Positions 36,777 through 47,050 are shown, counted from the stretch's first letter. The stretch: DNA of 64,000 nt from Blastocladiella emersonii ATCC 22665 (GCA_025594325.1 JANHCV010000005.1:186001-250000); one strand, 5' to 3'. Notes: generated by a model from the sequence alone, not told the origin. Made by a program: numbers and translations.

Positions 36777-39700
36777 TCAGCTCGCGCCGCCCTCGGCGAG
36801 CTCGTCCTCCTCCTCGTCGGCGCGTGCGCGATCGGCCTCGTCGTCCCACTCGTTTGCAGCGAGCGCGGGCGACGATGCAGGCGCGGATGCGGAAGCCGCC
36901 GTTGATGATGCTGCTGCAGCTGCAGCGGCCGCCGCCGCGGCGGCCTCCTGGCTGCGCGCGAGCTGGGTGCGGGCGATGAGGCTGACGAGCGCGATGCGGT
37001 GCTCGCGGGCCGCGTTGCACGCGCACGCCGCGAGGAACTTGGCGCACTCGTCGTACGGGATCCCGCACCGCGACCGGCGCGTCTGGAAGCGTTGCCGGAG
37101 CTACGAGTTGCAAGGCGCGGGGAATGGAGAGAGAGTCAACGAGCTCACGGGAACGGCTGACGGGGAGCGCGGGCATGCGAGCGCGATGCGGCCAAGGGGA
37201 AGGAGACGCGAGCGTACCGTGAGGTAGGTCTGCTTGAGCGACTGGTGCACGATCTGGCCGGTATCGGGGTGCACGTAGGTATGGGCGGCCTGGATGTGCC
37301 GGTTCCAGTCCTAGACGGTGAGCGGAGTGATCAAGGGCGAGCGAGTGAGTGAGTGAGTCGGTCAGCGCGCGAACATGATCAACTGGCGAGCGGCGAGCAC
37401 AAGCCCGATCGGAATGGTGATCATGCTTGGCGGAGATGATCGTCGGCGAGTCATGATCCCTGCCATACAGACACGGCGGAGAACAGCACACTGGATCCAG
37501 GTGCAGAGCACCGAGTGCCGAAAAATTCGGTGCCAGCGGCGGGGGCATGGACCGGAGTGGAGTCAAGCAGGTCGACGCCGCGCACGCGAGTAAAGAAAGA
37601 AAGTCACGGACCTCTCTTGGAGCAATGATGAGCTTGCACCCGATCCACGACAGACACTGGCGCGGCCCGCGGTCCGGGTACAGGTCGATGCGGTTCTTGA
37701 GCCGCGTCCACTTCTTGCGCCGCATCCCCGCGACGCGGTGCGACTCGTTGAGCGTCGTCGTGCCTGCAATCACCAAGCGTCAGCGCTCGCGTCCACGCGT
37801 CAACGTCGAGCACACGTACTCAGCGTCTGGAGGATCTCGAGCGGCGCGTCCTCGGGGACCGGCGGCCACGCGTCGTCCGCGTCGCCGGCGGCGCCGAGCC
37901 CGTGGTCCGTCGACGCGGCGGCGCACGCCGCGTGCTCGGGCGACTGCTGGTCGAGGTACAGCCACCGCGACATGTAGAAGTAGGTTGCGAGGTTGAAGAC
38001 AAAGTAGTCGCGGCGCTACAATCGGGCGAGAGAAACGAGTCAGAGAGACGTGGAAACCAACTCCCACGACGCGAGCGCGACGTACTGCCGTGCCGTTGGC
38101 GTTCTGCGCACCCTCCTCGTCGCCCTCGTCCTCGTCGCCGTCGCTCTCGCGCTCAGCTGCTGCGGGTTCCGGCACCGAGGCTGCTGCCGGGGCCGCGTCA
38201 CCCGAAGTCGGGACCGACGCGTCGCCGCGCGAATCGGGATCGCCGTGTTGCGGAGCGACGGGCGCGCGTGCCGACGAGGAACCCGTGCGTGCCGCTTTGG
38301 CGGGACTCGTCGACGCCGTGGCGGCCGCAGTGCTCGTCGCGCTGCTTGCGGCTGCCGTCGTCCCAGCCGCGCTACCCGCGGGAGCCAGCCAGATGGCGCT
38401 CGGCCTCCCGCCGCGCCGCCGCTTTAGCGCCGCCGCGTCACCTCCTGCTGCAGCAGCAGCCGCCGCCGCTGCGGGCGCCGTCGGGTTAGGCTGCGGAGCG
38501 GGTGCGAGCCATGGATGCCGCGCGACGTACGGCTGCAGGCTGAGCTGGATGGCCTGCGCGCTCGTCGGACTCGGCGCCGACGGCGACGCGCGCGTCTGGT
38601 CGTCGGGCAACGGCGCGTCAGGTGCGGGGAACCCCGTCGCGTCGACGCGGTCGAGCCAGTTGCTGGACGCGAGCACGGCGTGCGGCGGGGTCAGGGCGAC
38701 GGCGGGCGGCGTGAGCTGCTGCTGCTGCCGCTGAGACCGAGTGTGCGCGGGCGGCGGGCCCGGCCGATCTGGGACCCCAGAAGATGGCGGTTCCGGGCGC
38801 TCGGGCGCGGGCGCGCGGCATGGCGGTGGCGGGGGAGGGGAAGCCGGGCGGTCGTGGTGGTGCGACGCAGAGCTCGGCAAATGGGCGCGCGGCGAGCAGG
38901 GCAGCGAGATCGGCGGGCCTGGCGGCGGCGGGTGCCTGGCGACGGCGTAGTACTCGGGCTCGACGTCGTGGTCGTACTCGTGGCGGACACGCGCGCGGCC
39001 GTAGTCGGGATCGTGCGCGACGTGAGGGCCGTACGCGTGGTAGCCGTGGCCGTAGTCGGGGCGGCCGTAATCGTAGTCGTAGTCGTGGGCGTAGTCGAGA
39101 CTGCGCGCGCCGAGCTCATATTCGTGCGGGTGCGCGTAGTAGTCGAAGCCGCCGCCGTAGTCGTGCGGGTGCCCGTACGGGTCCCAGTGCGGCGGCGGCC
39201 GTCGTGGTGGAGGCGGCGGCGGTCGCGCATAGTACGGGTCGTGGCGGCGAGGCGCGGGCGCGTAGTGGGCGGGCGGCCACGGCGGGAGCGGGAGGCCGTC
39301 GGGCCCGAGCGGCGGCGGCGGCGGGTGCGAGTGCGGATACGCGTGCGGTGGCGGTGCATGATGTGGCGGGCCGGTGAAACGTGGTGGAGGAGAAGGCGGA
39401 GGGCCGGGAAGCGGTGGCGGCGCGTGGCGGTGCGCGAGCGACGCGTCGGGGGCCATGTCCGACGCGTGGCGCGCGCAGGGGCGCGCGTGCGGGTGCGGCG
39501 CGCCGGGCCATCCCGGGACCGCGTCGACCCACGCCTCACACTCGCCCGGAAACGGCAATCGGTGCGCGTGCGGCGGCGGGACCGCGACAGGCGCCGCCGC
39601 TGCTGCCGCCGCGCCACCAACTTTGCGATCACGATCACGCGCGGCGCGTTGTTCGGGCGTCAGCGGCGACGAGAGCGCGTGCGAGCCCGAGGACGAGGCG

Positions 39701-40947
39701 GCGTGGTCGAGCCGTGCGCGTTTGGACGGCCGCGTTGCCGACGACACGGACGACGGCGGCCCGCTTCGTCTGGGAGGTTCGAGCGGGCGGGCCGCGTCGG
39801 CCTGGCTCGCGGTACGCACACGCGGCGGCACGGGAGCGGGCGCCGAGGCCGATGGAGAAGCGCCGGGCGCGATCGTGCGAAGGTGCGTGTCCTTGTGGCC
39901 GGCCGCGTACCGAGGCCGCGGGCTCGGGCCCGACATACGCGAGGGCGGGGGCGGCGGGGGACGCGCGGGGCCGCCGCTGCGCGGTGGGAAGCCGGGTCCC
40001 CTTGTCGCGTACGGGGGCGGCGGGTGCCCGAAGTGTGTCTCCGATGGCGGTGGTGGTGGCGGCGGCGGGTAGCCGTGGTGGTGGTAATACTCCAAGTACG
40101 GGTCGGCGGCATACGAGGGCGGCGGCGGTGGTGCGTGCACGGGCGCGGGGCGTGGCGGGTACCGGCTCGGATACATTTGCTCGAGGTGGCCGCGGTGGTC
40201 GCGGTCGGGCGACGGTTGGCGATCGTCGCGGTGGCGCGGGGGATGACGTGGATCAGGATGAGGGTCGCGAGCGGATGTTGGAGGCGGCCGGCCCTTAACG
40301 GGGGCGGGGGAGGGAGCGCGCGAAGCGTCAGCGGCGGACGGCGGACCGCCGGTCCCCCGGCTGCCAGGACGAGCCGCGGGCTGCACGGGAGGGGCGTGTG
40401 CGGGCCCGGCCGCCGCCGAGGCCGCGAACGAGGATGCATGCGAGGACAAGGGCACGGCGCGGGCCAGGTGGGCGCCGCCGCCTGCAGGAACTGTTGCACG
40501 TTCGATGCCGCCGCCGCCCGCGGACGCCCCCGCCGACGCCGCACCCGACCCCGCCGCGTGCTCCACCACCGCCTGCCCGCCCGGGTGGCGGTCCTGCGGC
40601 TGCGGAGCGGGCTCACGCGGCGGCGGCCGCACACGGGGTCCAGGGGCGGCCGACGACGCGTGGGCTCCGGCAGGGCCGTGGCCGCGGTCGCTGATGTAGT
40701 GCGGTGGTGGTGGCGGCGGCGGCGGGGAAGCTCGCACACGGTAGGCGTCGTAGCCGTAGTCGTAGCCGTAGCCGTAGCCGTGATCGTAGGGGTGATAGTG
40801 CGGATGATGGGGGTGGGGGTGAGGTAGGTGTCGCGGCGGCGGCGGCGGGTGGTGCAGCGCTGGATCATGGTGCCCGAGTCGGCGGTCGTCGAGCACCGGG
40901 GCAGCACCTGGCGCAGCTCGCCGGCGCGGGCTCGGTCGTCGCTCCAT
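36777..40947 (-). CDS. Pro/His/Tyr-rich protein with a C-terminal integrase zinc-binding (H2C2)-like domain
   Basis: A long first exon (ORF 37780-40947) is joined by short GT-AG introns to KLIIAPRE-DWNRHIQAAHTYVHPDTGQIVHQSLKQTYLT-LRQRFQTRRSRCGIPYDECAKFLAACACN. Stop at 36777-36779. Confidence 0.65.
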
Positions 40948-41783
40948 GGCCGCCGCTCAGGGCGAGGCGAGGGACGAGGCGGATGGGCCGGCGCGAGTGG
41001 CTGGGTGGCTCACGGGCGAGAGCACCGATCGTGGCCCGAGGGAAGGCGATCGCGTTGCTGCGGACGCGGGCGAGGCGATGTTGGCGAACGTTGCGCACTA
41101 CGCGGAGGGTGAGCGCGAGGGCGAGCGGGCGAGCGAGGTCAGCAACGGCGACGAGCGAAGAGCGGCGGCGGCGGCAGAGCGGATCCTCACGCTTGGCACG
41201 ATGCGATCGGGACCGCGGTGGCGGCGACCAACGCGGTGTCCGTCCATGGCATCAGGGCCGTGGGCGAGCCGGATGTGGGCAAGCGCTAGGGGATACTTTG
41301 CGTGGCAGGTTGGCGTACCCGTCGTGGCGTGGCGTGTCGAGCGAGCGGATCCTCGCGCTCGAGTGAGCGGGCAAGCGAGCGGGCGGGTGAAAAGCGAGAA
41401 GGCGGCCTGCCATGGGCCGGCGCGACTGCTCGCTGGACTCGGTGCAGCCGGCGGTTGGCCTTGGCTTTTGGGGGCGTGTGTGTGGGGCAGCCTGGCCGAG
41501 CAAGGCGGCAGGGCAGCGGCGGCGGCGGCGGACAAGAGGGGAGAGAAGGAATCACCGCGAACCGAGGCCGAGCGGCTCAACGAGCCCGACCAAATCAAGC
41601 GCGAGCGGGGCGAGCGGCGAGGGGGGGTTGTGTGCCGATGTCTTCTGTTCCACTGTGACGAGTGCGGCTGCGGCGGCTCTCCTCTCACCGCTCTGGTTGG
41701 TCGCGAGAAGACAAGGGCTGCCGAGGTCGGGCTGCGCGCCACGTCCGGCTGCGCCAACTGTTGCAGTTGAGGGCTTTCGTTAC

Positions 41784-41842
41784 TGCTGTAGGTAGCAGGA
41801 ACGTCATGGCGGATCCGTTTTGTCCACTCTCACATCATAGCA
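41784..41842 (+). repeat. 5' LTR (59 bp)
   Basis: tgctgtaggtagcaggaacgtcatggcggatccgttttgtccactctcacatcatagca, identical to 42046-42104. Confidence 0.95.
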
Positions 41843-41856
41843 GGTTATGAGCCCTG
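41843..41856 (+). promoter_or_regulatory. Primer-binding site complementary to the anticodon arm of initiator tRNA-Met
   Basis: GGTTATGAGCCCTG is the reverse complement of CAGGGCTCATAACC (fungal tRNAiMet anticodon arm, recalled) and abuts the LTR. Confidence 0.88.
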
Positions 41857-42045
41857 GCGGAGTTCGATCCTCTGCGCTAAACAATTTATAGTTCGGGGGA
41901 GCGGGACTACAGCATGACTCTGGCACTCACCATCGTGAAAAAGGCTTACGACACTAAATGGAGATAAATGCGGAAGGAAAATGCCCGCCCCAAGAGACCA
42001 GAAGCCTGATGGACCAGCGAGCTGTGATGCTCGAGTGCGGGGGAG

Positions 42046-42104
42046 TGCTGTAGGTAGCAGGAACGTCATGGCGGATCCGTTTTGTCCACTCTCACATCAT
42101 AGCA
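42046..42104 (+). repeat. 3' LTR (59 bp), preceded by PPT GGGGGAG at 42039-42045
   Basis: Identical to the 5' LTR and followed by TSD GTTAC. Confidence 0.95.
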
Positions 42105-43259
42105 GTTACCGCTTCATTCCGCACGACATGTGCCTCGCGATCCGTGGCAGAGGTGTCTGCCCGCCGTCGGCGCGCTCCGTCCCTTCCTGCGCGGTGCCGG
42201 CGGCCTCGGACGGCCAAGCACCCAGAACGGGATGCCACGGGCGCCGTGTCTCCCTCGCTCGCGGCGGTTCCAGTCGCGCCGCGTGCGCGCTCCCAGGGGC
42301 CATGGCGCCATCAACCCGAGCCGTGCCCCGTCTCCTGCCCCGTCTCCCACACGGCCCGCGCGCCAGGCTCCGGGCGGCCCACCGGACGCGCGCTGCGCAG
42401 CCGGCATCGGGCGGCAGGCGTGCGACCCGTGGCGGATCCACGCGTCGCGCGTCACGTCCGCGCCTCGCCGCGGGGTCCGCGGGCGCGCGCCGCCACGCAG
42501 ATGCGGACACGCCCCGCTGCTTCACGCGCTCCCGATCGAAACGCGTGACCCGCTCACGTGCCGGGTTGCTAGGGGGTGCCGGGCCCGCCGCCGCGGATCA
42601 CAAGCATCAAGCCCGCCGTCGCTCCCTGGCTCCGAGCCCTTGGCCGTTCTCTCCCGCTCGGATCATCCGATGCGGCTCGGCGCTCTGCTCGGCGCTGCGA
42701 TCGTGAGGAACGACTGCTCTCGCGTACGCCGGACGTGTGGACATGGGCGTGTGGGCGAGTCGCCGCCTGTCTCGCGCTGTGCTCGGGCGATGTGTTCGCC
42801 CCGCGCTTGACGGATCGGCACTCGTCGCTGCTCATGCGAGCGCACGCGTCAGCCCGTTGAGGGACGTCCTCGCTCTGAACGAGCGGTCGGCAGAGCGTCC
42901 CCGCTCGGGCGATTTCTCGCTTGTGAGTTGCGCATCGAAGACAAGCTTGGGACCGAGTTAATTTGCACGAGGTTGGAGAGTATTAAGAGTCGAGGGGAGT
43001 GGAGTTCGTGGTCGGGCGGAATTATATTTTCTCTGATCGGAGCCGTGATCAATCACGCCGACGTGAACGACGCGTCGCGGCGTCACCTCCCGCGCCCGAC
43101 GGCGTGGTGGCATAGTACCTCTGGTGGTGGCTGTTGCGACCGCGAGTGGGTGAGCTCAGTTCACCGCGTTGCGCCACTCAGCGCGGACTTCGCTCAGTCA
43201 TGCGTGCGACTCGGCCATCGCGGCTCCCCATGCTGCCGACCACACATTCCCTGCCTGGT

Positions 43260-44660
43260 GACCACCGACCGCCGCGATCACAGCCTCGATCGTCGTCCTG
43301 ATCCCTCTGATCCAGTTCGCCGATCGCTTGCTCTGCATTGCACAGACTTGTGCTCCCACCCAACAGCGCGTCACAGCTCGCTCGGCATCGCTCGGGGCAG
43401 CCTCTTCGCCAGCCCGGCGCGAAAAGGGTTGACACGGCGCGACGCGTTCTCCGCGACCTGTCCGATCATGGCCGCCGGCCAGCCACGATCACAGCCTCGA
43501 TCACGGCACCGCGCTCGCACCGGATTCTGACGACGAGGAGGTCATCGACAGAATACACGATCCACCCAGAACGCCGGCGCGCACGCTTTCATAGCTCGCT
43601 CATCGTCAGCTTGCGCAACGACTTGGCCGGCTCCGCGTCGACCGCCTTCGCGCGCGTCCAAGGTGAACCGGGTTGCGCCGCGCCGGGTTCCACTTCGACA
43701 TATCTCGCACTGGCATGATGCGGCAGGAAGCGTCGTTTACGACGCGTTCGGCTCCCTGAACTGAACGGGTCGTGTCGTGTCGTGTCTCGACCCAGGAGTC
43801 TCGCTCCGCTCGCCTGCGCGCCTCGGATCCACCTCCTTCCCTTCTGCGTCGGTCGCATGTACTCGATCCTGTGAGCACACGCCTCGCTGCGCGGGTCACA
43901 ACGTGACCGCGCGGATCAAGGATCACTCCAACGCCGCGCCCGATGATGGCCGCCCGCCAGCCACGATCACAGCCTTGATCACGACACTGTCCTTGCACTG
44001 GATTCTGACGAGGAGAGGACCGACAACGGAACACATGAGGTCCACTTTCTTTCGACATACCCCCCACCGTCCGGACGTACGTCCCCACAACTCGCTCAGG
44101 GTTCGTTGGTGCGGCGCCCTCACCAGCTCTACGCCGACCACCTCACGCGCGTCTAAGGCAAAGCGGTTCGCGTCACGCCGGTTTATCTTTCGACACATCT
44201 CGCACTAAGAAAGTGTTGCTTGCGACGACCCCAGAGGCCCGCGTCGGTTGTGAAACGGGCCGCGTCGCGTCGCGTCGTGTCTCGACCTGAGAGTCTCGCT
44301 CCGATCGTCCGTGCGCCTCGGATCCACCTCCTCCTCCCTTCCCTCGAAGCTCGCCCGTCGTCGCTCCTGCGAGCACACGCTTCACTACTCGGGCCACAAT
44401 GTGGCCATGCGCGCAGACCATGGATCTCTTCAGCATCAGCGCCGTGTCCGATGATGGCCGCCCGCCCGCCGCGATCGTATCCTTGATCACGGACGGCTCC
44501 GCTCTGCTCGCCCTCCCGCCACATCGGATTCAGAATACATGAGGTTCTCTTGCTCTCCACACACCCACAGCGCAGCGCAGCGCACACTTACAGCTCGCTC
44601 AGCGTCAGCCGGCGCAGCGTCTTGGCGAGCTCCGCGTCGAGGCTGCTGACGCGGACGCGG
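43260..44660 (-). repeat. Degenerate tandem array (~500-bp units) derived from the GYP7 C-terminal codons and 3' flank
   Basis: Tail copies end at 44588 (functional), ~44085, 43589 and 43371. Shared gatgatggccgcccgcc...gatcac blocks lie at ~43464, ~43942 and ~44450, and gtcgtgtctcgacc...cctcggatccacctcc blocks at ~43778 and ~44274. Confidence 0.8.
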
Positions 44661-47050
44661 GCCGCGTTGGGCGACGTGCGGCCGCCAGCAGCCGGCGACG
44701 CGCTGCCAGCCGCCGCGGCACCCGCGCCCGCGGCGGGCGACGCCTGCGCGGACCGGACGATTGTGGCCATCTTGTTGTCGAACACCTGGAACAGCTCGTC
44801 GGCGGTATCGAGGACCGAGTCGACGAGTAAGTTTTCGGCGAGGTTGTTGACGAGCTTGAGGACCTCGTCGAACGCGGAGCACTGGGCGAGGACGTCGGCG
44901 CGGGCGTGCTCGAGCATGGCGAGGGCGACGAACACGGGGTACTCGGCCGACCGCACGTCGGCGAGGCACACTTCCCACACGCGCATCACGTCCGGCGTCG
45001 AGTACTCGCGCTTGAACCAAATAAGCAGCCACCGGAACGCGAAGAACATGTTGAGCGCGTCGCACTTGGCCAGGTGCCGGAACAGCGGGAAGTCGACAAA
45101 CTGCACCAGCGCGCGCAGCGTCGTCAGCTGCGCGTGCATCGCCTGCTGGTCCATGTGGAAGTTTGGGTGCTATACGGGGAGCGCGCGCACGTCATGGTCA
45201 GCCATCCGGGATTGCGAGAGAGCGGGCCCGCCGTGATCGGAGCCAAGTACTCAGACCCCGATCGATCACTCGCGGCGCCGCGGCTCCGCGCCCGCGCTGA
45301 GCCGCGACGGTCGCCGGGATCCGGCGTCAAAGCGGGCCATCGTGCGAGTGCGGTGCCAACGTACCAGGCGCTCCATGAGCCCGACGAAACACCAGAACGT
45401 GTCGACCTCGTCGCCGGCGTGCAGCATGAGAAGGACCGAGCACAGGTCGCTCATGCCCTGCACGTAGCCGAGCTCGCCGCGGCCAATCTCGTCGAGGTAC
45501 TGCACGTACGACGCGAGCACGTTGGTGAGCTTGACGAGGCTCGGGTTGACGAACTGGGCCGCGGCCGCGGCCTCGTCGAGCGCGCCCGTGGCCATGAGGA
45601 ACTCTTCCTCGTCGAGGTTGGTCGCCTTGGGCGTGTCGCCGTCGGCCTCGAGGTACGACGCGTAGAAGGCGTGATGGCGGTCGGTGCGCTACGACAAATC
45701 ACGCGTCAGTTGCAGTCGAGGTGATCAAGTTGATCAAGCGGTACGCACGATCACGTCCTTGACGATGCGGTGGCGCCAGTCGAGCCAGATCTCCCACTGC
45801 GCGGGGTTCATGGTGGCCTCGGAGTAGGTCTGCCACTTGGCCTTGAGCTCGGCGTAGTGCTTCGACTTGGCGCGCACGATGGCCTCCTGCTCGTCCATGG
45901 TCGACCCCCACGGGAGGAAGCCGAGCAGGAATTTCCACACCTGCGGGCGCACGTCGGGGTCGATGCCCTGGGTTCGAAGGAGCGTGTGAGTGACCACTGG
46001 GCACGGAGCGGTGATCAAGAAAAGAAGAAGAAGAAGCGTACGCCGAGGAAGATGCGCTCTTTGATCTCGAGGATCACGTCCGTGACGTTGGGCTCGCCGC
46101 CGTCCGAGTCCTCGCCCGACGGCACGGTCGAGGGTTCGGACCCGTCGAGCGGGATCGACTGGCGGAAGTTGGACGTGTAGTACTGGACCCAGAGCTCGGC
46201 CGTGAGGCGCTTGGCGGGGCTGCGCTTGGACGCGGGCTTGGGGAGCGACGAGCCCGTCTACAGCAGCGCGTGTGAGCATCTCCGCGAACCCGGTGTAGCA
46301 GCAGAGTCGCGTACCGAGACGAGTCCAAACTCGCCGAGCTCCGTCTCCTCGTCGCTGTCCTCCCACACGTCCTCGTCGGCGACGACGGGGCGGCCGGTCT
46401 GCGCGTCGGCGGCGCCCATGACGCGGTGCGAGACCCAGCGCGCGAGGTACAGCGAGGCCATGGGCAGCTCGCGGACCACCTCCTCGACGACGGTGCCCGT
46501 GTGCTCCTCGGGGCGGTACGTGGTGGCCAGGCCCTGCACGTCGCGCGGGAGGACGGGCAGGATCGGGCGGCTGAGCGGGTGGTCGAGGATGCGCGCTACG
46601 GTAGGTTGTGGTGGGTCGGTGAGTGTCGGGCGGGAGGGCAGTGGGATGAGATCGCGTACTGGCCGTGTCGCGCGACGCCCGCGTCACGCGCGCGAACCGC
46701 TCGAGAATCGACCAGCCGACCTCGCGCACCTGGCTGCTGACCTCGGGGTCGAGCTGCTCGAACAGCGCCGACGCGGCCGAGAGCACGTTCGGGTGCTGTT
46801 GCTGCGACTGAGGTGTTGCGCGCGTTCCCGCCTCCGACGCGGACGCAGCGGGCGGCGCGGGCAACCGCGGCTCGTCGGGCGGCATGACGGGCTGCAGCGG
46901 CGCGGCATACTCGAGCATGACGGTCGTAGTGGCTGTTGTCGGCGAGGCAGGCACAGCGGCGTCGGACGCGTGCGCGTGCGCGTCGTCGTCGTGCGCAGCA
47001 GTGGCGGCGGGGGCGTGGTTGCGCTCGTCGCCGGCCATGATGTCGGTCAT
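44588..47050 (-). CDS. GYP7: TBC-domain Rab GTPase-activating protein, Gyp7/TBC1D15-like
   Basis: Motifs GWSILERFARVT, GIDPDVRPQVWKFLLG, IVKDV-RTDR, LGYVQGMSDL, TFWCFVGLM and FFAFRWLLIWFKRE. Multiple introns. Confidence 0.9.

Follow-up and report, generated by a model that had tools for sequence, protein, structure and literature searches.

Terminal-repeat retrotransposons in miniature, or TRIMs, are a routine annotation in fungi. CcaRetroS9 of Cajanus cajan, 233 bp in length with 52-bp long terminal repeats (LTRs), is among the smallest published TRIMs (Gao et al., PMC4717578), and SMART/FRetro129 of grasses measures 292 bp with 85-bp LTRs (PMC3281118). Helenus, a group of fungal TRIMs reported from Pucciniales and a few Agaricomycetes only, has copia partners, 5-bp target-site duplications and a dominant primer-binding site (PBS) that matches the anticodon loop of initiator tRNA-Met (tRNAiMet) (Kojima 2024, PMC10886601). 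Ty5 and Drosophila copia use the same PBS type and are primed by half-tRNAs (PMC5371799, PMC10886601). Here we analyze a 321-bp element within a 64,000-nt stretch of the Blastocladiella emersonii ATCC 22665 genome (the window, on contig C17; coordinates are numbered from its first letter). The window holds a genuine, intact TRIM, as had been described in an earlier, sequence-only reading. The element is very probably an intact member of a B. emersonii family that has a low copy number and was recently active. No paper on the retrotransposons of this species was found in the literature searched.

An intact TRIM and its genomic copies

The TRIM is composed of a 203-bp interior between two 59-bp LTRs, which are 100% identical and have TG..CA ends (TGCT...AGCA). 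The LTR proper starts with TGCTGTAG and ends with CATCATAGCA. The repeat finder returned an exact direct repeat of 60/60 nt (41784-41843 and 42046-42105) because base 60, a G, is common by chance to the start of the PBS and to the GTTAC duplication; other genomic copies have a different base at position 60, so the LTR is 59 bp. The polypurine tract (PPT) is a purine run, GGGGGAG, at 42039-42045, directly before the 3′ LTR. The G+C content is 52% for the TRIM and 70% for its neighborhood or, given as ranges, 51-57% compared to 70-80% in the surrounding region. The structure proposed in the sequence-only reading, from the GTTAC duplications and 59-bp LTRs to the PBS, the 203-bp interior and GGGGGAG, was borne out to the base. 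A further claim, that the interior end reads RVRGSA like a copia C-terminus, is not supported: these letters come from reading the PPT and the start of the LTR in a single frame, and the open reading frame of the candidate partner described below ends ...PVKTK*, 26 nt upstream of its LTR. The TRIM interior shows no similarity to that reading frame and has no coding capacity.

Copies were sought in the whole 32.65-Mb genome and their flanks were inspected. Five full-length copies are present, on contigs C17, C9, C16, C5 and C20, four of which differ from one another at only 1-4 of 321 positions (99-100% alike) and are flanked by perfect, distinct duplications (GTTAC, AAGGA, GGGCG and GGCGT). 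Two derivatives have a 5′ internal deletion that joins LTR nt 1-17 or 1-9 directly to the distal interior, and these also have perfect duplications (CCCCA and CTGTC). About 14 distinct solo LTRs were found, 13 with a perfect pentamer duplication and one with a 4/5 match, and one further TRIM copy is recombined into a copia element on contig C6. Altogether, 19 independent insertions carry their own perfect 5-bp duplication, all of them different and each a 1-in-1024 signature. This outcome agrees with the prediction that the element is a non-autonomous TRIM with further copies at other target sites. Short LTRs with TG..CA ends, a tRNA PBS, a PPT, a small non-coding body and dispersed copies with duplications of their own together identify it as a TRIM. 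For the presumed mobilization in trans, a candidate partner can be named from LTR tips, PBS, PPT and the composite element on C6.

The assembly at this locus is supported by Logan unitigs, built from short reads of the source sample. Unitigs span both flank/LTR junctions of the window copy, and no unitig joint in these reads skips the TRIM. Unitig depth is 121 in the flank, 680 in the interior and 2900 in the LTR, which corresponds to ~5.6x for the interior and ~24x for the LTR. The predicted empty-site 28-mer and the LTR/PBS-junction 28-mer had 0 matches in metagenome contigs.

The sequence-only reading took zero LTR divergence as a sign of a very recent insertion. Recent activity stands, but a 59-bp LTR has almost no dating power, and the four copies that differ at 1-4/321 positions are the better sign that the family has been recently active. 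The window TRIM is probably still mobile. Ongoing activity is suggested by the near-identical copies together with the open frames at three partner loci; insertions could therefore serve as strain markers and may alter nearby genes.

Several other features of these insertions were observed. The C5 copy (C5:932426-932745) has unlike LTRs, its 5′ LTR being a 58-bp variant (CCACT-TAACATC) that is also found in the C6 composite. One deletion derivative is present twice on C11 with identical flanks, indicating a segmental duplication. One solo 59-bp LTR is likewise present twice, inverted and with identical flanks, at C12:13570 (-) and C12:45152 (+), near the contig end and beside tRNA-Thr, tRNA-Cys and tRNA-Ala genes. 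Targeting to tRNA genes was considered and rejected, since only 2 of 24 loci have a tRNA gene within 1.5 kb. Insertion flanks are less GC-rich than their surroundings (58% vs 62%; window, 69%).

The putative primer tRNA and a candidate copia partner

The PBS is an exact 14/14-nt complement of linear nt 26-39 (standard numbering, 27-40) of the host tRNAiMet, in the anticodon stem-loop. The word GGGCTCATAACCC occurs only in 11 tRNA-Met(CAT) genes, nine on C1 and two on C16. The three tRNAiMet genes that were read (L031, L040 and L041) encode the same 72-nt tRNA, with A1:U72, three G:C pairs in the anticodon stem (GGG:CCC), A54 and A60. These are the marks of eukaryotic initiator tRNAs. C1:4812-63781 contains nine copies of a 7371-bp tandem repeat, each with tRNAiMet, tRNA-His(GTG) and tRNA-Pro(CGG), and the only two further tRNAiMet genes, on C16, each adjoin a tRNA-His.

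The PBS is thus positioned on the anticodon stem-loop instead of the tRNA 3′ end, the arrangement of half-tRNA (Hemivirus-type) priming, and the match to the host tRNA agrees with the earlier proposal of a PBS for a tRNAiMet half. The actual primer would be a cleaved 5′ fragment of tRNAiMet. Complementarity stops just before the base equivalent to G26. In tRNAs, G26 is commonly dimethylated, a modification that blocks reverse transcriptases, and such a block would explain the 14-nt length of the PBS.

An active copia partner had also been predicted from the window. Across the genome, 25 copia reverse-transcriptase matches (Pfam RVT_2) were found. Autonomous leaders of at least four types, and LTR ends of three (..AGCA, ..AACT and ..TATA), were seen at genomic PBS sites. 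One family, copia-255, is 6242 bp in length with 255-bp LTRs and has several signals in common with the TRIM. Its LTRs start with TGCTGTAG and end with AATAGCA, so that the first 8 and last 6 nt are the same as in the mini LTR. Its PBS is identical to that of the TRIM, plus one further common base, and its PPT, GCGGGAG, is in the same place as the TRIM GGGGGAG. Open frames of 1857-1875 aa are present at three loci (C5, C6 and C8, the C8 copy being duplicated) and contain Pol_BBD, rve, SH3_retrovirus and RVT_2 domains, an HHCC-like motif and YVDD. Duplications are 5 bp (CTGGT, GTATC, GTATT, GCGCT and AACGC), and four of five solo LTRs have perfect duplications (AGCTT, CAACC, TTCCA and ATGGG), with the fifth at 4/5. 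LTR pairs differ at 3-11 of 255 positions. The C8 copy occurs twice, inverted and with identical flanks, at C8:120887-127129 (+) and C8:146331-152573 (-). This arrangement, like that of the solo-LTR pair on C12, points to large inverted segmental duplications.

The two families meet in a single element on C6. This copia copy (C6:796248-802812, minus strand) is 6565 bp in length, 6242 + 323, with the order LTR255 - PBS - TRIM interior - LTR59 - AG - LTR59 - PBS - 1875-aa open frame - LTR255. The extra 323 bp consist of the TRIM interior (203 bp), LTR59, AG and LTR59, and directly follow the 5′ LTR255 and directly precede the copia PBS, so that the PBS occurs twice; the outer duplication, CTGGT, is perfect. 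Such a structure would result if a TRIM 2-LTR circle and a copia copy recombined by one crossover inside the 15-nt PBS that they share. At the junction, CA-AG-TG, the final two PPT bases are retained, which would be expected from a plus-strand primer cut two bases upstream. Template switching at the PBS while the minus strand was being made was also considered and set aside, as it fits less well and would leave one LTR59 only. The composite may be a rare relic of a 2-LTR circle that returned to the genome through recombination.

From these signals, a mobilization cycle can be proposed. RNA running from the 5′ LTR to the 3′ LTR would be packaged into particles of an autonomous copia, likely copia-255. 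Transcription would start and end within the 59-bp LTR, which must still hold U3, R and U5. The minus strand would be primed on the 14-nt PBS by tRNAiMet whose 3′ end is internal, at ~nt 40, as in the 'half-tRNA' mode, and plus-strand synthesis would begin at the GGGGGAG tract. The partner integrase would recognize the shared LTR tips (TGCTGTAG...ATAGCA) and insert the cDNA with a 5-bp duplication. Later LTR-LTR recombination would leave solo 59-bp LTRs.

Alternative origins and sibling families

We consider copia-255 the probable partner of the TRIM, because the LTRs of the other copia families end ...AACT or ...TATA and not ...AGCA. Mobilization by a different copia family, or by several, is improbable. 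At least three other autonomous families are present in the genome, and the identical PBS, GGTTATGAGCCC, is found in every copia family, lying behind an LTR end at most of 32 non-tRNA genomic sites; however, the 8-nt and 6-nt LTR tips and the PPT core are common only to copia-255 and the TRIM, and the sole composite found joins these two. The family would then be moved in trans by copia-255 in particular.

That the TRIM is merely a recent internal-deletion derivative of copia-255, and not a separate lineage, is very unlikely. Although deletion derivatives of copia-255 exist (C21, 5051 bp; C3, 4549 bp) and LTR tips, PBS and PPT are common to both, neither the LTR body (59 vs 255 bp) nor the 203-bp interior can be aligned with copia-255 beyond these signals. 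The start of the interior and an LTR motif are instead common to two other mini-LTR families.

These sibling families were recognized through the region directly after the PBS. In the window TRIM, TTCGATCCT (41863-41871) is a 9/9 complement of the tRNAiMet T arm (shuffle p=0.006). Overlapping it, TCCTCTGCGCTAA (41868-41880) is a 12/13 complement of tRNAiMet nt 7-19, in the D arm; none of 2000 shuffles reached this score (p<0.0005), and p was 0.002 in an exact 10-mer test. In the copia-255 leader, the tRNAiMet matches are collinear and weaker (CCTCT.CGC and AAGACGC; p about 0.05). At five other sites, which belong, by match coordinates, to the two other mini-LTR families, the PBS is directly followed by a related module, (G)AGTTCGATYCC.GTCTGCGC. 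The sizes of these families are estimates from match coordinates. In the second family, the LTRs measure at least 60 bp and end ..TTCTTCA, the interior is 158 bp, and there are 12 or more LTR matches. Two of its copies carry, on the 5′ side, an LTR end typical of another copia family (..TTCTATA) and, on the 3′ side, the mini LTR. The LTR of the third family ends ..CAACT, like those of 'AG..CT' copia families, and matches itself on both strands, indicating that it is partly palindromic. The LTR motif GTTTTRRTCCACTCTC is common to the window TRIM and both siblings, and the sibling LTR ends, ...TTCA or ...AACT, are as in other copia families.

The module was missing from 4/4 autonomous copia leaders examined, and, when it was sought as a possible copy of a host tRNA 3′ end with up to 2 mismatches allowed, only the mini elements matched in the genome. 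To our knowledge, D- and T-arm boxes have not been described for half-tRNA-primed elements. We tentatively suggest that it could be an extended primer-binding or packaging module common to related TRIMs. A more specific and rather doubtful proposal is that 41863-41880 is specific to the parasite and allows better capture of the primer tRNA, or better entry into particles, than the partners achieve; TRIM lineages would then share a 'primer-grabbing' core, with LTR tips each adapted to a different copia integrase (..AGCA, ..TTCA/..TATA and ..AACT). If so, binding of the whole tRNA would precede its cleavage, since a 5′ half does not include the T arm.

The same region raises the question of transcription by RNA polymerase III, as in TRIMp3-type (Helenus/Cassandra-like) elements, with GAGTTCGATCC just after the PBS as a B box and the LTR TTTT as terminator. 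In favor of it, CGGAG-TTCGATC-CTCTG allows a T-arm-like hairpin containing a B-box core to be drawn, sibling families have a similar GTTCGATYCC motif after the PBS, and GTTTTRRTCCACTCTC recurs in their LTRs. However, nothing at the right spacing is credible as an A box, the hairpin lacks covariation in the sibling families, and this 3′ end matches no host tRNA gene to within 2 mismatches. The TTTT in the 5′ LTR would either stop polymerase III or deprive the transcript of terminal redundancy for strand transfer. In Helenus, moreover, the tRNA-like part is positioned in the LTR and not in the interior (PMC10886601), whereas tRNA- or 5S-derived promoter boxes were not found in the LTR of the window TRIM and only a B-box-like GTTCGATCC was seen, in the interior. 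ARAGORN found no tRNA at the TRIM, and an Rfam scan of 41500-42400 at E up to 10 gave two chance-level matches only and no tRNA, 5S or ribozyme. A hammerhead ribozyme in the terminal repeats, the mark of retrozymes, was thus not detected at this threshold. RNA folding showed no unusual structure (interior, z -0.18; whole TRIM, z -0.80). With no A box, a hairpin that is not conserved and a misplaced TTTT, polymerase III transcription of this type was rejected as highly unlikely.

A chance local duplication or an assembly artifact, the outcome named in advance as fatal to the sequence-only reading and favored by nothing beyond the small size of the element, is refuted, because the same TRIM recurs with 19 different perfect 5-bp duplications, read depth matches assembly copy numbers and unitigs cross both junctions.

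Several observations nevertheless weigh against a recently active TRIM family moved by copia-255. No recognizable promoter was found in the LTR. The fifth full copy (C20:1672215-1672535) is ~5% diverged and has unlike flanks (CGCTG / TTGGG); this copy and that on C5 suggest recombination or conversion between copies. The sampled partner copies diverge more among themselves (97.5% identity between those on C5 and C6) than the young TRIM copies do. Finally, the PBS is common to all copia families, so what singles out copia-255 as the partner is 14 nt of LTR-tip sequence together with the PPT and the composite on C6.

The TRIM is positioned 832 bp upstream of the ATG (40947) of a minus-strand gene, 36777-40947, in agreement with the ~830 bp given in the sequence-only reading, which suggested a possible effect on the promoter. 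The 1055-aa open frame of this gene (37780-40947, -) had 0 homologues at E <= 1e-10 among 8000 candidates scored. The last exon of the neighboring gene (44591-45169, -) is 100% identical to the NCBI protein 'GTPase activating protein' of B. emersonii ATCC 22665, so the fungal host assumed in the sequence-only reading is correct.

Table 1. Positions of the window TRIM's parts (window numbering) and of related elements (contig coordinates)
Feature	Position	Strand	Remarks
Left target-site duplication, GTTAC	41779-41783	+	Same pentamer at 42105-42109; other pentamers at other copies
5′ LTR, 59 bp, TGCTGTAG...ATAGCA	41784-41842	+	Identical to 3′ LTR
PBS, GGTTATGAGCCCTG	41843-41856	+	Starts directly after the CA of the LTR
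Post-PBS boxes, TTCGATCCT (41863-41871) and TCCTCTGCGCTAA (41868-41880)	41863-41880	+	Complementarity to tRNAiMet; putative function
Non-coding interior, 203 bp	41843-42045	+	Opens with PBS, closes with GCGGGGGAG
PPT region, GCGGGGGAG	42037-42045	+	Abuts 3′ LTR
3′ LTR, 59 bp	42046-42104	+	Identical to 5′ LTR
Right target-site duplication, GTTAC	42105-42109	+	Same pentamer as left
TRIM deletion derivatives	C11:624563-624686, C11:761435-761558; C20:1086391-1086553		
Second mini-LTR family	C4:266735-267013; C19:268578-268855; C17:605260-605634; C19:1474468-1474579		
Third mini-LTR family	around C21:1046037-1046352		Related matches C16:697135, C5:1003241, C3:643402, C3:680278

Comparison with known systems

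The Blastocladiella TRIM and copia-255 would form a compact, well-defined parasite-host retroelement pair in a high-GC, early-diverging fungus. The pair would show how small the sequence needs for mobilization of an LTR element are: 8 + 6 nt of tips, a 14-nt PBS, a 7-nt purine tract and a 59-bp LTR. Copia-dependent fungal TRIMs primed from the tRNAiMet anticodon loop (Helenus) and a smaller plant TRIM have already been published, and the understanding of LTR retrotransposition is unchanged by this element. Its chief remaining points are the 2-LTR-circle composite and the post-PBS module shared with the sibling families.

Like TRIMs generally, the element is tiny and non-coding, with TG..CA ends, a PBS, a PPT, a 5-bp duplication and solo LTRs. 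Its 59-bp LTRs are unusual in their shortness, as the sequence-only reading held, but not unique, given the plant TRIM with 52-bp LTRs (PMC4717578). As with FRetro129/FRetro64 (PMC3281118), the putative partner shares little beyond a short LTR motif, the PBS and the PPT. Unlike those plant TRIMs, it is hosted by an early-diverging fungus (Blastocladiomycota), its PBS is on the tRNAiMet anticodon stem-loop and not the tRNA 3′ end, and its copy number is very low (~6 interiors and ~24 LTRs).

Helenus is similar in sharing its PBS with copia, in having LTRs unlike those of its partner and in leaving many solo LTRs with duplications. It is defined, however, by a tRNA-derived sequence with A and B boxes in the LTR, and none is present in the Blastocladiella 59-bp LTR. 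Ty1 and Ty3 (PMC5371799) also have template segments outside the PBS with complementarity to the tRNAiMet D and T arms, but they prime from the native tRNA 3′ end, and the Blastocladiella boxes are statistical observations only. Whereas Ty5 of S. cerevisiae and Drosophila copia (Pseudoviridae) are autonomous, the Blastocladiella TRIM is non-autonomous, with a priming mode deduced from its sequence. Like both of them, it has a 5-bp duplication and a PBS on the anticodon stem-loop of initiator tRNA-Met, a position that implies a primer with an internal 3′ end.

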